Virus record (IMG/VR): IMGVR_UViG_3300028829_003504
Coordinates: 1-64,000 of that record
DNA: 64,000 nt
Reading direction: 5' to 3' (one strand)
A program made the translations under genes and the position numbers. Below, piece by piece: positions 51,136 through 56,538 of the stretch. The notes beneath the pieces are model-generated. The model saw only the letters and a program-made list of their open reading frames with translations. It did no database searches and had not been told where the DNA came from. Every line of letters starts with the position of its first letter. Position 1 is the first letter of the stretch.

Positions 51136-53142
51136 CTATATAGCTACTTCACCATCTAGCTTGGGGCCATGTTCATAATTATGGAGAACAAAATGGTCAC
51201 CTGTCAACTCGTCGAAACTCTCAAAGGGCTTGACTTCTAATGAAGGCATAGGTTTAACTTCTTGCTTCATCTGTTCTTCAAATAGATCTCGATGGAAGTC
51301 ATAGATATGATAGTCACCAAACATGTGAAAGAAGTTACGTGCTGCCATACCTGACTTCTGGGCAAAGGCCATAAGTAACGCACTGTAACTGCCTATGTTA
51401 AAGGGAACTCCGATGAACCAATCCGCGCTGCGCTGGTACATTGTCATATCAATGAAGTACTTAGGTACACCTTTAGAATCGAAGAATTCACCGACGACTC
51501 TTAGATGTTCCTCTTTATCGGCACAAGACATAGAGAATAACTCTTGACTAATTTTACTTTTGATTGTAACCACTACCATAGGGTTCTCAGGATTATAGTC
51601 TAAAAGACCTTCTCTCTCCATGAAGTAAGAGTCTTGCATTAACTCCGCAGTACGTATGTTCGACCAATGTTCATAGCGGTCGGAGTGACTCATAGGACTT
51701 GTACCTAATTGGAACATCATGTGACAGGGAGGTAACGCTTGCTGACCGACCGTTGCGTTTTCATGAGGCTCAAAATATCTTACTTTAGGAGCATCCACGT
51801 AGTCAAGTAAAGCTTCGAGTAATTCCTCCTCGTTCAGACCTTCGGGGAGATCTGAAGGTCCTCCATTGTGTAGGAGACTTTCGCAGTAATCACGCGCTTG
51901 CATTATGGGTGCTTCACCTCCAGAGTCAAGACGCCGTTCGGCCTCATCCATCCACTTCACATTAGCCATTACTTTTTCAATTTCACCGTCCAGATAGTGC
52001 TCTTTGCGATCTACTTGGTTTGCAAATGCTACTTGCGTAACAGGAGTTAAGCCTGGGTTCAAGGCAGTAACTAACATACGGCGGTCATTAGGATTGTTCT
52101 TCAAACTTTCGGCAACGGCATCCAGTTGATCAAACTTCTTAGTATACACAGTATGCTCGGCATCCCATTTACCTTCAATACCTAACGCATTAAGAACTCT
52201 ATAGTAAGTTTCAACGAAAGCGTTGTACTCAGGTAACTCTAAGACATTGTCCCCGAAGTACATTTGGATAGTGCCTTCACTGAGATCACGCCCAGAAGCT
52301 TCGGTAGTAGTAATTATACTAGAGCGCATGCCGTTTTGTTCAAGATAGCCCTGGAAGTCTTCGAGAGTGAAGTCGCCATTTTTAATCTTAGCCCGTAGTT
52401 CTTCATCCATTCTACTAGTTTGGTCAAAAGAGCCTTGTGCAATATAGTTCTGGTTTATTAAGAAGTCAATCATACCAGTATTAGTATCAGCCACGGTGCG
52501 TGTGTCTTCCCATGCTCGCCATTGTGCTCCGTATACAGGACCTAGATTCCCATTGTTGTCAGCCCAACCGTCCCATATTTTAGCACCTAATGTTTTAATG
52601 TTCGTTTCACCTCGACATAGCCAACCCAGCTCTTTCATGATACCTTTAAAGGCTGTGAACTTAGTAGTGACTAGAGGGAAACCATCACGCATATCGAATT
52701 GCATCATGTGGCCGAACAGCTTAGTAGTAGGCGTTGTAGTTCTGTTTCCGCTACGCGCTCCTGCGTAAAGAATGTCCTGAGCCGCAGATAGATACTGTAC
52801 ATCGACATGTCTTTTATTAGGATGATTCTGCCAGGTATTAGGTACTTCTTTTTCTAACGTACCTGATTTAACAAAAGTAATAACAGCATTACGGCCATCA
52901 TAATTACTGTACTGCGCCTGTACTACCACAAGAGGTCCACGTAATGTGTAAGGGCCTGTACGGTCTTCGTAGTGGCAATGCTGTATTAAATCACCTTCCT
53001 TGAAGCGGCTAGACATATCGCGGTCTATATTAAAGAAAGAAACAATATGGTAATGATCAATGTCAGTAGCCATCAGGTAATCACATTTAAGATGGACTGA
53101 TTTACCCATCATAACTTGATAAGGTATTTTAACTGATTCCAT
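51136..53142 (-). CDS. thyA: thymidylate synthase with N-terminal extension and three large insertions
   Basis: NRT, FPLVTTK, EL.W, IWDGWA, LGPVYGAQWR, DRRM, LPPCH, YQRSAD..GVPFN, GDYHIY. Confidence 0.92.
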   Translation of the reverse strand: MESVKIPYQVMMGKSVHLKCDYLMATDIDHYHIVSFFNIDRDMSSRFKEGDLIQHCHYEDRTGPYTLRGPLVVVQAQYSNYDGRNAVITFVKSGTLEKEVPNTWQNHPNKRHVDVQYLSAAQDILYAGARSGNRTTTPTTKLFGHMMQFDMRDGFPLVTTKFTAFKGIMKELGWLCRGETNIKTLGAKIWDGWADNNGNLGPVYGAQWRAWEDTRTVADTNTGMIDFLINQNYIAQGSFDQTSRMDEELRAKIKNGDFTLEDFQGYLEQNGMRSSIITTTEASGRDLSEGTIQMYFGDNVLELPEYNAFVETYYRVLNALGIEGKWDAEHTVYTKKFDQLDAVAESLKNNPNDRRMLVTALNPGLTPVTQVAFANQVDRKEHYLDGEIEKVMANVKWMDEAERRLDSGGEAPIMQARDYCESLLHNGGPSDLPEGLNEEELLEALLDYVDAPKVRYFEPHENATVGQQALPPCHMMFQLGTSPMSHSDRYEHWSNIRTAELMQDSYFMEREGLLDYNPENPMVVVTIKSKISQELFSMSCADKEEHLRVVGEFFDSKGVPKYFIDMTMYQRSADWFIGVPFNIGSYSALLMAFAQKSGMAARNFFHMFGDYHIYDFHRDLFEEQMKQEVKPMPSLEVKPFESFDELTGDHFVLHNYEHGPKLDGEVAI

Positions 53143-53368
53143 GTTCTACCTCCAAGAAGTCTACTAGGGCGTCGATGGTGTGGATGTCTTCGGCTTGTTT
53201 ATCTAAGATTTCAATGCCAAAAACTTCTTCAATTTCCATGAAAAACTCAACGTTGTCAAGTTCATCGAAACCTAAATCTTCCCAAGTGGTATCAATTTCG
53301 ATTTCATCTTCGTCGATACCAACTACTGTAATTGCGGCTTGCTTGATTTTATTAATAACTGATGACAC
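53129..53368 (-). CDS. acyl carrier protein-like protein lacking the phosphopantetheine Ser
   Basis: DLGFDELDNVEFFMEIEEVFGIEI.D..AE.I.T versus AcpP [20 protein letters not shown]; codon GAA (Glu) at the Ser position. Confidence 0.85.
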   Translation of the reverse strand: MSSVINKIKQAAITVVGIDEDEIEIDTTWEDLGFDELDNVEFFMEIEEVFGIEILDKQAEDIHTIDALVDFLEVEHGIS

Positions 53369-53389
53369 TATATATTCCTCTTCTTTTAG

Positions 53390-53647
53390 CTAGTTTAGTT
53401 CTTGAGTTAAATCTTTATAGTAAGGGCAAGTAACGCCCACGTCATTAAGTAACTCATGTAAGTGGTGATTGTTGTAGAAGCCATGATACTTCTGGGAGTT
53501 ACTAGGCATCGTATTTGGATTCTCTTGAACCCAATTGATTCTAATACCTTGTCTACCTTCAGAAGCGTACAACCGTATTTCCCAAGCATCTTTCACCATC
53601 GATATATATATAATCACCGCACGGTATATGAGACTTAGGCCCGCCAT
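53390..53647 (-). CDS. hypothetical protein
   Basis: 85 aa ORF. Confidence 0.4.
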   Translation of the reverse strand: MAGLSLIYRAVIIYISMVKDAWEIRLYASEGRQGIRINWVQENPNTMPSNSQKYHGFYNNHHLHELLNDVGVTCPYYKDLTQELN

Positions 53648-53695
53648 CGTTAAGTGTTGTAGGATGGACAGTGAAACCTAGAGAAGTTAGTAAGT

Positions 53696-54022
53696 CTATC
53701 GCTGACATAATTCAGGGTCCAGATTCAATTTAGATATATCCACTTTATGTTCTTTCAAGTACTCACCCAACGTAACACTACCGTTGTGCTCCATACGTAA
53801 ACCAAAGTTAGGCGGGGATAAAGTATTACCTAATGTTGATGCCTGGGCGTCAAGTACATTGATACGACCTGCTGCGCTTTTCTTGTAGTGCTCATGGATC
53901 CACTGCAGGTGCTGTACTTCGGTTACGAAGCCCCAACATTGATTGCTTTCCCACCAGAAGAATGGGAACTTACCTGATAATTCCGCTTTATCCTTGGCAC
54001 TTAATGATTGTTGTAGGCTCAT
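53696..54022 (-). CDS. hypothetical protein, paralog of 46982..47281
   Basis: KFPFFWW... motif; ATG at 54022 with AAGGA RBS. Confidence 0.65.
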   Translation of the reverse strand: MSLQQSLSAKDKAELSGKFPFFWWESNQCWGFVTEVQHLQWIHEHYKKSAAGRINVLDAQASTLGNTLSPPNFGLRMEHNGSVTLGEYLKEHKVDISKLNLDPELCQR

Positions 54023-54076
54023 GGTTCGGTCCTTATGTGTAGAGAGCAGACATAAGCGCCTACTCAAGTTATCATT

Positions 54077-54088
54077 TATTTACAGTTT
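54077..54088 (-). promoter_or_regulatory. promoter-like motif AAACTGTAAATA
   Basis: Exact copy. Confidence 0.7.
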
Positions 54089-54533
54089 ACTGCAAACGCT
54101 TTCTAAGAGTCACGGAGCTCTGTTCGTACCCGATGGCCTCAGAAGCAATAAGCATAAGCTGATTGTTTCGCATAGTACCGTACTCAATGTAGTGGACGCC
54201 TACATCGTTAGCGATCTTTTCAACTTCTTCTATGAGTTTACGGAAGATACCCTGCTGCCTATACAGAGGATTAACGTAAACGAACCCTACCCAAATGTAA
54301 GTATCATCCATTGAGTTTGCATGTATAGAGTAAGTTAAAACACCTAAGCCTTCGTTAGAGTCCCCATCTGTAATATAGATATACGGGTCACGCGCGCCTA
54401 GCGAGTAACCTCCATCGACTAGCACTAGGCGATTTGCTACTAATTCACTCCAGCCTTGTGCCGCAAACACGAAACCGCCACCATTACATAGCTGTTTAGA
54501 TTTCTCTATGATGTAAGGAATACTATCAAGCAT
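54087..54533 (-). CDS. GNAT acetyltransferase
   Basis: VYVNPLYRQQGIFRKLI (motif A), N..M......GY. Confidence 0.85.
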   Translation of the reverse strand: MLDSIPYIIEKSKQLCNGGGFVFAAQGWSELVANRLVLVDGGYSLGARDPYIYITDGDSNEGLGVLTYSIHANSMDDTYIWVGFVYVNPLYRQQGIFRKLIEEVEKIANDVGVHYIEYGTMRNNQLMLIASEAIGYEQSSVTLRKRLQ

Positions 54534-54534
54534 A

Positions 54535-55029
54535 CTACAGCGCCTCGACATAGCCAAGAAACTTAGTAGCTTTAGCCACACGTGCCTTGAACATTATGTC
54601 AGTAGGTATGCCCATTTTAATTCTAGATATATGTAAGGCAAGGGCCCCTAGAACAAGCTGTACCTCATGTGAATTACGCATACCTATTAGATAATCTATT
54701 ATTACACCTATAGCCGCATTTATATGAGCTACGGTTATTAGTGTACCCTGCTCACCGATAAAGACTACATCATAGGTCTCTTTTCTATCGAGGCTTTGTA
54801 CGTCAACCGGGAACTTAAATACAATGCCCATTTGAATAAGCATAGTTTCAACGTCAGCTACTTCGCAGGCTAGGTCATATAAAGAATCGTTATGGTTACG
54901 CTTAATACTAATATGATAGGTATTTATTATCTGCGCCGATAGCTCATTAAGTTCTTCGATAGTTTTCAATGTCTGCTCACGTTGGCCTTTGTGGGCCAAC
55001 ATAGTATTACACATTTTTAATAAATTCAT
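54535..55029 (-). CDS. MazG-like NTP pyrophosphatase family protein
   Basis: QTLKTIEELNEL...EVADVE; ATG at 55029 preferred. Confidence 0.6.
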   Translation of the reverse strand: MNLLKMCNTMLAHKGQREQTLKTIEELNELSAQIINTYHISIKRNHNDSLYDLACEVADVETMLIQMGIVFKFPVDVQSLDRKETYDVVFIGEQGTLITVAHINAAIGVIIDYLIGMRNSHEVQLVLGALALHISRIKMGIPTDIMFKARVAKATKFLGYVEAL

Positions 55030-55366
55030 TGCTATTCTTCCTGTGGCTAATATTATATACTTCGTCGTACATACGGCGACTGTTTGGACATAAGGCATTT
55101 ACGATACGACCAGAACACACGCTAACCCTGTTCTTAAAGCGTAGGCCTTTCTTCGCATAGTTGACTTCGTAGTCGTCGGTATGTCCTTTCTTGTGGTATT
55201 CAATTCTGTACTGGAGTAATTTCTCCAAGAGAAGTCCATCGGTGAAGATTTTAGTTTTGATGTGCCTACTGATACTGCAATCAAGCATAAGGTTTTGGCA
55301 GTCATTGGCTTTCATCAATTCGTTAATACGTGCGGCAAGTTGTCGTGCAAGGTACTCAGTAATCAT
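55007..55366 (-). CDS. hypothetical protein
   Basis: 119 aa ORF. Confidence 0.55.
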   Translation of the reverse strand: MITEYLARQLAARINELMKANDCQNLMLDCSISRHIKTKIFTDGLLLEKLLQYRIEYHKKGHTDDYEVNYAKKGLRFKNRVSVCSGRIVNALCPNSRRMYDEVYNISHRKNSNEFIKNV

Positions 55367-55885: not shown

Positions 55886-56207
55886 CGTTGTTTATAAAAA
55901 TACAATCGGCTGATTGCACAAAACATGCCGTACCGGGCGATATCTCAATATTCATTAAGTTGGATATATGCTGCACATCACTTATGAAGGTAGTACCTAA
56001 TATACTAGAATAGAATCCTAAGGATATACTAGGTTCTGACTTGATGCCTTCTCGACCGAACGCCATCATAGCCTTAGCTAGGTCATCCTCCTTTATAGGT
56101 ATGACTACTACTGCCTTAGCTAAGATCTTTAAGAAAGATATTTTGTAGGAACAGGCTGATTTGACAAAAAACCTATCTATTAAATTCTGGACTTTACTAT
56201 CTTCCAT
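55848..56207 (-). CDS. miniature major-capsid-like protein
   Basis: GFYSSILGTTFISDVQHISN...ISPGTACFV aligns with capsid GQIATLQGMTLLTDGYRAPN..LRPGEIYVV. Confidence 0.55.
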   Translation of the reverse strand: MEDSKVQNLIDRFFVKSACSYKISFLKILAKAVVVIPIKEDDLAKAMMAFGREGIKSEPSISLGFYSSILGTTFISDVQHISNLMNIEISPGTACFVQSADCIFINNGEAWLQVDPIWD

Positions 56208-56538
56208 CTCTAAGCTCCTTTACCCTATTGTCTAATACTATTTTGTAGTTGTTACCGTGGCAGTCATCAGGACTGCACCAGCACACCAGTGCTATCTTCT
56301 CACCCTTTAATACCCTAAGAGCAAGTAGATTTAACTGTTTACGTAAATAACACTTACGTTTCATCTTTCTATTTACATAATCACGATGGGCAGCTATTGA
56401 GCGTCCTCGAGTATCTCGGTGCTCATTGTTACCAAACATCGTTGTCCTATCTATAAGAATGTGTGTGTATCCTTCAGGTATAGGTGCAGCACCTGCTCTC
56501 TTACTTACAACAATAATATCATCAGGTTCGAATAGCAT
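56197..56538 (-). CDS. DUF4326-like protein
   Basis: IDRTTMFGN...L.CWCSPDDCHG motif. Confidence 0.75.
   Translation of the reverse strand: MLFEPDDIIVVSKRAGAAPIPEGYTHILIDRTTMFGNNEHRDTRGRSIAAHRDYVNRKMKRKCYLRKQLNLLALRVLKGEKIALVCWCSPDDCHGNNYKIVLDNRVKELRDGR

Follow-up and report, generated by a model that had tools for sequence, protein, structure and literature searches.

What can a phage gain from an acyl carrier protein (ACP) homolog in which the serine that receives the prosthetic group has been replaced by glutamate? This question is raised by a 79-amino-acid ACP-like protein encoded in IMG/VR virus record IMGVR_UViG_3300028829_003504, a complete phage genome (261,788 bp, 41% G+C, direct terminal repeats). 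The name window is used here for its first 64 kb (positions 1 to 64,000). Few bacterial proteins are as highly connected as ACP, whose partnerships outside the carrier role are still under study. The serine at position 36 is needed for attachment of 4'-phosphopantetheine, and a protein without it cannot become holo- or acyl-ACP. The window protein carries glutamate at this position (Glu36), and it may represent a natural ACP fold with a carboxylate for serine in which the docking function has been parted from the carrying function.

Here, we propose, with a probability of about 0.4, that the window protein is a non-carrier docking protein of the ACP fold with a fixed negative charge, and that its likely partner is the thymidylate synthase ThyA, with which it appears to be co-translated. 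Glu36 would block the attachment of 4'-phosphopantetheine, the carrier role being given up, and would supply a permanent negative charge at the N-terminus of helix II, where holo-ACP has its phosphodiester. The otherwise intact acidic face of helix II could dock partners, with the protein acting as a small acidic subunit or regulator. Through the overlapping start of the two genes, the ACP-like protein would be made in fixed proportion with an enlarged ThyA, and the candidate partner is ThyA itself or a nucleotide-synthesis complex around it. Should such proteins bind thymidylate synthases or host clients of ACP, they would be phage accessory subunits or host-takeover factors of a new type and provide ready-made probes for ACP-binding surfaces.

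The gene and its site codon are located as follows.

53129..53368, minus strand: gene for the ACP-like protein (79 amino acids, GTG start, TAA stop), a putative non-carrier variant whose prosthetic-group site is occupied by Glu36
53261..53263, minus strand: GAA codon of Glu36, at the position of the phosphopantetheine serine, residue 1 of helix II
53377..53380, minus strand: GAGG Shine-Dalgarno sequence of the ACP-like gene, 8 nucleotides before the GTG start

The window protein belongs to the ACP superfamily by fold and profile, yet it lacks the defining chemical feature of this superfamily and falls below the equivalog threshold of AcpP. It matches the PP-binding profile of Pfam (PF00550) with an E-value of 1.6e-10 (41.6 bits, cut-off 20.8) and the "acyl carrier protein" family phrog_5934 with 1.5e-16, and its best sequence relative among solved structures is the ACP of Vibrio harveyi (2l0q, 1.2e-10), with E. 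coli AcpP at 1.8e-9. The AlphaFold2 model, built with 38 sequences, has a predicted local distance difference test (pLDDT) score of 91.9 and consists of four helices (residues 3-16, 36-50, 56-61 and 65-76), and Foldseek superimposed it on solved AcpPs with template modelling (TM) scores of 0.84-0.90. Acidic residues outnumber basic ones by 23 Asp and Glu to 3 Lys and Arg. The original prediction, made from the letters of the window, had described the protein as AcpP-like in length, acidity and motif, and this description is borne out. The AcpP equivalog cut-offs are missed, with 54.7 versus 70.45 bits for TIGR00517 and 54.1 versus 71 bits for NF002148. The Ser-bearing ortholog reaches 69.1 bits on TIGR00517 against the 54.7 bits of the window protein, which has therefore drifted further from AcpP. 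A match to mitochondrial ribosomal protein L50 (PF10501, "Ribosomal subunit 39S") stayed below threshold, at 18.6 bits versus a cut-off of 25.1.

At the site itself the protein reads DLGFD-E-LD (DLGFDELDNVE), with Glu36 in place of the conserved serine of D-S-L that characterizes the PP-binding superfamily. Residue 36 aligns to serine in every alignment, as claimed from the GAA codon, and in the model it is the first residue of helix II (residues 36-50), the expected attachment site. The docking-face residues D35, L37, D38, E41, E47, E48 and D56 are kept, and the alignment shows that T64, another conserved ACP position, is kept as well. The protein thus resembles bacterial AcpP (E. coli, V. 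harveyi; PF00550, TIGR00517) in its length, four-helix fold, acidity and the residues D35/L37/D38/E41/E47/E48. In contrast to AcpP, it has Glu36, no phosphopantetheine or acyl cargo is expected on it, and its gene is a phage gene that lies beside thyA and not in a fab cluster. The earlier statement that it cannot carry acyl chains is supported by the established biochemistry of ACP and by the content of the phage genome, in which no gene for a phosphopantetheinyl transferase (PPTase), no second PP-binding gene and no acyltransferase of the PlsB/C type were found. An association with fab or pls genes is likewise absent, the neighbors of the ACP-like gene being thyA and genes for GNAT, MazG-like and DUF4326 proteins and a UvrD helicase. 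Phosphopantetheinylation has presumably been lost in the window protein.

Glu36 is read consistently. The identical ACP-like protein is recorded in JGI, ENA and Logan assemblies, and contigs from two marine metagenome runs, at about 18x word depth, agree with it letter for letter and show no variant. Because the two runs derive from a single sample, which may itself be the origin of the window DNA, their agreement indicates consistency, not independent replication. The codon GAA differs from TCA at two positions and from all other serine codons at three; as at least two base changes separate it from any serine codon, a single miscall cannot explain Glu36. Although every available run comes from that one marine sample, the identity of the JGI, ENA and two Logan assemblies and the base changes required to regain a serine codon leave a sequencing or assembly artefact with a negligible probability.

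Coupling to an enlarged thymidylate synthase

Downstream, the ACP-like gene runs into the start of thyA.

51136..53142, minus strand: enlarged thymidylate synthase ThyA of 668 amino acids (PF00303, 5e-73; AlphaFold2 pLDDT 86.6)
53129..53142, minus strand: overlap of 14 nucleotides between the 3' end of the ACP-like gene and the thyA start (ATG at 53142)
53149-53153, minus strand: GGAGG site for thyA, within the ACP-like gene

The overlap had been noticed in the original prediction, where it was treated as incidental. Its existence is confirmed, whereas its incidental status is not: a 14-nucleotide overlap is found in the window and in two further lineages (L006 and L011), and it is the most conserved feature of the gene context. 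Together with the internal GGAGG site, it indicates translational coupling of the ACP-like gene and thyA. The ThyA of the window is about 2.5 times the usual size. It comprises an N-terminal all-beta domain (approximately residues 12-100, confidently modelled), the ThyA core and three mostly helical insertions, and it keeps the catalytic PPCH and YQRS motifs. The phage genome also encodes DHFR outside the window (G000:C1:216615-216899 and 191046-191591, HD hydrolase and DHFR), which is consistent with ThyA being a working thymidylate synthase.

Relatives of the ACP-like protein were sought in several collections. Among 1.84 billion representative proteins searched exhaustively with HMMER, none related to it exceeds 50% identity. 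Megablast matched the region to no deposited phage, a related-locus search of viral contigs with the ACP-like protein and ThyA as queries gave no relatives, and a word-indexed protein search with the ACP-like protein gave only the self-match. The best single-domain match (P0011, 47% identity) has a common HGIS C-terminus and is encoded on a 311-kb contig (L006) in the order GNAT, small genes, ACP and a 674-amino-acid ThyA, with ACP and thyA overlapping by 14 nucleotides. The same arrangement, again with a 14-nucleotide overlap and with a ThyA of 672 amino acids, surrounds the C-terminal domain of P0273 (L011/L012, 33% identity). The ThyA proteins of these two other jumbo-phage lineages are 62% and 52% identical to that of the window. 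By its nearest relatives, its HGIS C-terminus and its 14-nucleotide overlap with the gene for a long ThyA, the window protein belongs to this ThyA-coupled clade of jumbo phages, and it has in common with the two orthologs the GNAT-containing block and a similar ThyA (672-674 amino acids in the orthologs). It differs from them in the site residue: both orthologs retain D-S-L-D, with the serine codons TCA and TCT, and are in principle modifiable by a host PPTase.

One of the two doubts attached to the original prediction, serine in close homologs, therefore stands, as two true orthologs keep it, while the other, a sequencing error, does not. Since both orthologs keep D-S-L-D, the Ser-to-Glu change is confined to the window lineage among the three coupled jumbo-phage lineages. 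The only stop-free path from TCA to GAA leads via GCA (Ala), so loss of the site was probably tolerated first and the charge gained later; in the window lineage, loss of the modification site would have preceded the gain of charge.

Long ThyA proteins of 559-689 amino acids are also encoded in other jumbo-phage contigs. Insertion 1 of ThyA (about 90 amino acids) was found only in the four lineages whose ACP-like gene adjoins thyA or precedes it by about 2 kb. In two distant relatives with a long ThyA, L014 and phage NCTB, ACP-like genes lie 1.5-3.2 kb upstream of ThyA; the ACP-like gene of L014 has Ser at the site, and of the two ACP-likes of NCTB one has Ser and the other Asn.

A second thymidylate link was found in a complete 61,228-bp phage contig of IMG/VR, where a single open reading frame (ORF) of 510 amino acids (P0277, L171:856-2388, minus strand) encodes a fusion of ThyX and ACP. 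ThyA and ThyX are unrelated enzymes for the same catalytic step. The fusion protein consists of ThyX (PF02511), a Zn-ribbon-like CxxC...CxxC linker and a C-terminal ACP-like domain with the motif GFDELD. Its ACP domain is 39% identical to the window protein, its closest relative being a Glu-type viral ACP (L026, 55%). P0277 resembles the window protein in the GFDELD motif and in the physical link to a thymidylate synthase, but differs in that the enzyme is the flavin-dependent ThyX, the ACP domain is fused C-terminally and the nearest kin of this domain lie outside the window clade. In the ThyX relatives of P0277 (72% identity, 410-450 amino acids) the protein ends before the ACP domain, and the next gene is an unrelated, Lys-rich one; because such close relatives have no ACP domain, the fusion is a unique acquisition. 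The conserved translational coupling and the ThyX fusion together make ThyA the best candidate partner of the window protein. No Thy gene was found beside Ser-type viral ACPs among the 120 loci listed. A complex prediction for the ACP-like protein and the 668-amino-acid ThyA scored 0.00, a value that weighs neither way.

Acidic residues at the same site elsewhere

Among the 150 best representatives, two other stand-alone ACP-like proteins are acidic at the site. P0147 (Glu) is encoded next to a SNF2 helicase and a sigma factor, and P0039 (Asp) together with YqaJ and RecT in the early region of a temperate phage. For a wider count, all IMG/VR contigs were scanned for the motif G-x-D-X-L-D-x-h-E-x5-E-E-x-F, in which the codon of X alone was varied. 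Asp or Glu (GAN, four codons) was found in 19 contigs, every one with an ACP-like ORF, and Ser (TCN) in at least 120; the scan demands the AcpP-like E-E-x-F context. Thr or Ala occupied the site in three contigs and Asn, Lys, His or Gln in four. Four acidic codons thus account for 19 contigs versus seven for the 16 other non-Ser codons. Thr, Ala and Asn are each one substitution from Ser, whereas Asp and Glu are at least two, and the excess of acidic residues over this mutational expectation points to selection for charge at the site. The 26 Ser-less domains form 12 clusters at 50% identity, which are not fully independent: eight acidic, one mixed (Asp, Gln, Ala) and three non-acidic.

Of the acidic clusters, the largest comprises the "acyl carrier protein" of Ackermannviridae (Vi01_122c and homologs), which is present in 271 deposited genomes of phages of Salmonella, Klebsiella, Escherichia, Dickeya and other hosts. 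In all ten members compared (36-100% identity) the site residue is Asp or Glu and never Ser, as exemplified by Vi01 (Asp), T751 (Glu) and CRW-SP2 (Asp), with the motifs GGD[DE]LD and QCDDLD. The gene follows one for a vWA-domain protein of about 733 amino acids (L258:7001-7324; L259, L260, L261). Judged from the site residue, the "carrier" annotation of this protein cannot be right; hundreds of phage genes labelled "acyl carrier protein" would not encode carriers and are due for re-annotation. The Ackermannviridae family and the window protein have in common Asp or Glu at the serine site within a D-[DE]-L-D-x-h-E...EE context, but the former proteins are 105-107 amino acids long, have an N-terminal extension and are encoded after the vWA gene and not beside ThyA. 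The window protein is not of Ackermannviridae descent, as its best matches are Ser-type orthologs and its gene context is different; it is akin to these proteins in kind but of a separate lineage. More generally, since its BLAST neighbors are Ser-type orthologs, the Glu of the window protein arose independently of the other acidic-site families. The original prediction suggested that Glu mimics the phosphate of holo-ACP; the underlying idea, that a negative charge at this site matters, gains indirect support, namely from the acidic residues of Ackermannviridae and from Asp and Glu being by far the commonest non-Ser residues in viral ACP-likes.

The acidic swap extends beyond phages. About 70 instances of this acidic motif were found in 185,579 bacterial species genomes, and at least 120 in metagenome contigs. 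An ORF (L241:6049-6291, plus strand) on a contig binned into a Nostoc metagenome-assembled genome, is what we take to be a near-identical copy of E. coli AcpP with Glu at Ser36 (GADELD) and few other changes. It adjoins a DDE transposase, and a search of the plasmid collection gave no match to it.

A broader reading of these data is that ACP-like proteins with Asp or Glu for Ser are convergent, unrecognised phospho-mimic decoys or adaptors that were recruited to thymidylate synthases in at least two unrelated phages. Under this broader reading, phages and some bacteria would repeatedly turn ACP into a charged docking module needing no coenzyme A and no PPTase. We consider it doubtful; if true, it would reveal a previously unrecognised ACP-type accessory subunit or regulator of thymidylate (dTMP) synthesis. 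A literature search, which was not exhaustive, found no description of a Ser-to-Asp/Glu class of ACP or of a ThyX-ACP fusion, and for phage ACP function, Ser-less ACPs, an interaction of ACP with thymidylate synthase and the Ackermannviridae ACP it returned annotation-level mentions only. As a single gene the window protein would be a modest curiosity, whereas what merits experiment is the recurrence and conservation of the acidic swap, along with the two connections to thymidylate synthases.

Alternative explanations

Several observations weigh against the proposed docking to ThyA. Ser is retained (TCA and TCT) in both orthologs with this coupled gene order, so a ThyA-linked role would need no Glu and may use the holo form there. 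Charge is not obligatory everywhere, as one Ser-less viral cluster mixes Asp, Gln and Ala and NCTB has Asn, and the acidic bias was counted within the AcpP-like context demanded by the scan. The association with Thy genes was spotted post hoc. No Thy gene lies beside the other acidic-site ACP-likes at 18 further viral loci, nor at the approximately 80 genome and 120 metagenome acidic-site loci listed; in Ackermannviridae the neighbor is the vWA protein, with no Thy link. The thymidylate link thus holds for two lineages and not for the acidic-site class as a whole. BLASTP revealed no partner domain common to the vWA protein of Kuttervirus, the 531-amino-acid protein of L018, the 372-amino-acid protein of L026, the ThyA inserts and the ThyX linker.

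The alternative that survives best, although we consider it somewhat unlikely, is that the window protein is a host decoy, i.e. a mimic of AcpP that cannot be modified and that keeps ACP-binding host enzymes (for example PlsB, Fab or Lpx enzymes, or AcpS) engaged, with a dominant-negative effect on lipid synthesis or on another ACP-dependent host process or defence. The residues of its helix-II docking face are those of gammaproteobacterial AcpP, and the acidic bias at the site would suit a phosphate mimic. Acidic-site ACP-likes are found in early or accessory regions of unrelated phages (next to an SNF2 helicase or near RecT modules), a pattern typical of host takeover. A precedent is provided by apo-ACP, which is reported to inhibit glycerol-3-phosphate acyltransferase (PlsB) more than holo-ACP does and to stop growth of E. 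coli (PMC3896788). However, two partners of ACP fit poorly: SpoT, named in the original prediction, reportedly does not bind apo-ACP (PMC3896788), and binding of IscS is reported to be lost with the S36T variant of ACP (PMC13343975). The window protein shares with laboratory apo-ACP and S36T an ACP surface without the prosthetic group; in contrast to these transient or engineered forms with Ser or Thr, it is natural, fixed and endowed with an extra negative charge. The decoy is further disfavored by the serine kept at the same locus in the sister phages and by the modest similarity to bacterial proteins: its identity to any bacterial AcpP is only about 35-45% and its score lies below the AcpP equivalog cut-off, so it does not closely copy a host protein.

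It is quite unlikely that the protein is a neutral or decaying variant, an accessory phage ACP that lost its serine and persists with little or no function. Such decay would agree with the restriction of the change to one of three orthologous lineages, with the profile score below that of the Ser-bearing ortholog and with the frameshift in the neighboring upstream gene in the window assembly. The gene itself, however, has an intact ORF, is preceded by a good ribosome-binding site and has kept the coupling overlap, and its product has a confidently predicted fold (pLDDT 92) with all other conserved ACP residues kept. The two-step path via Ala, moreover, ends in an acidic state that recurs and is conserved in other phage families, which argues against decay.

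A nucleic-acid mimic or anti-defence function, in which the acidic four-helix protein would block a host nuclease, restriction system or SMC-type complex and the ACP fold would serve as a scaffold, is improbable. The extreme charge (23 acidic versus 3 basic residues among 79), the location of the gene family in phage accessory regions and the solved structure of E. coli AcpP with MukBEF (9gm6, among the fold matches) speak for it, but canonical AcpP is equally acidic, which makes acidity unspecific, and the conserved coupling to ThyA would be left unexplained.

In the amino-group carrier LysW, a C-terminal Glu is the attachment point. An analogous role of the Glu36 carboxylate as the attachment point for another cargo is very improbable. 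In its favor are the retained carrier fold, the chemically reactive side chain at the carrier site and the GNAT gene of this block. However, Asp and Glu replace one another freely among the Ackermannviridae proteins, and Gln, Ala and Asn occur elsewhere, which argues against an exact covalent chemistry; moreover, the block showed no gene for an ATP-grasp enzyme or a ligase.

Neighboring genes and further ACP-like loci

Upstream of the ACP-like gene, the following genes form a syntenic block.

53390..53708, minus strand: small conserved gene that immediately precedes the ACP-like gene, frameshift-split at an (AT)n run
53696..54067, minus strand: conserved gene with the FPFFWWESNQCWG motif, part of the same syntenic block
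54087..54581, minus strand: GNAT acetyltransferase (PF00583, 1.4e-7), which precedes the ACP-ThyA pair in conserved synteny in each of the three lineages

The last of these is the GNAT gene whose proximity had been correctly noted from the sequence (54087-54581). In the small upstream gene, an extra AT at 53601 in run X2 gives an intact ORF of 106 amino acids, which is homologous over its full length to a 111-amino-acid gene of the L006 contig (L006:7663-7998). The (AT)n frameshift at 53601 is either an assembly slip or true variation of repeat length.

Upstream of GNAT, the window encodes a MazG-like NTP pyrophosphohydrolase (phrog_2245) and a DUF4326 protein (54535-55098 and 56197-56538, both on the minus strand), and a UvrD-type helicase and a dCMP deaminase are encoded beyond the 64500 to 56000 stretch. 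The genes for the MazG-like, DUF4326, UvrD and dCMP deaminase proteins form a conserved island of nucleotide metabolism that is syntenic in L005, L006 and L011. A protein with a RelA/SpoT-type HD hydrolase domain (PF13328) is likewise encoded by this phage; HD_4 genes are also found close to the ThyA region in L013 and to the Glu-type ACP in L026.

Among the distant relatives, the thyA region of L014 (L014:4001-6833) has its ThyA called as a 559-amino-acid gene and an 82-amino-acid fragment, with a small I-HmuI/NUMOD-like ORF between them, which looks like a homing-endonuclease or intron insertion. In phage NCTB (LT598654.1), the ACP-like protein with Asn at the site (KADNLD) corresponds to an unannotated ORF at 118328-118597 (L021), between BN7874_150 and BN7874_151, and the Ser-bearing one is BN7874_152, 1.4 kb further; both are upstream of the long ThyA. 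Finally, many large multi-domain proteins (P0010, P0013, P0016-P0019, P0026 and others) contain tandem ACP-like repeats that read LGIDTVKQ, with Thr for Ser, in every repeat.

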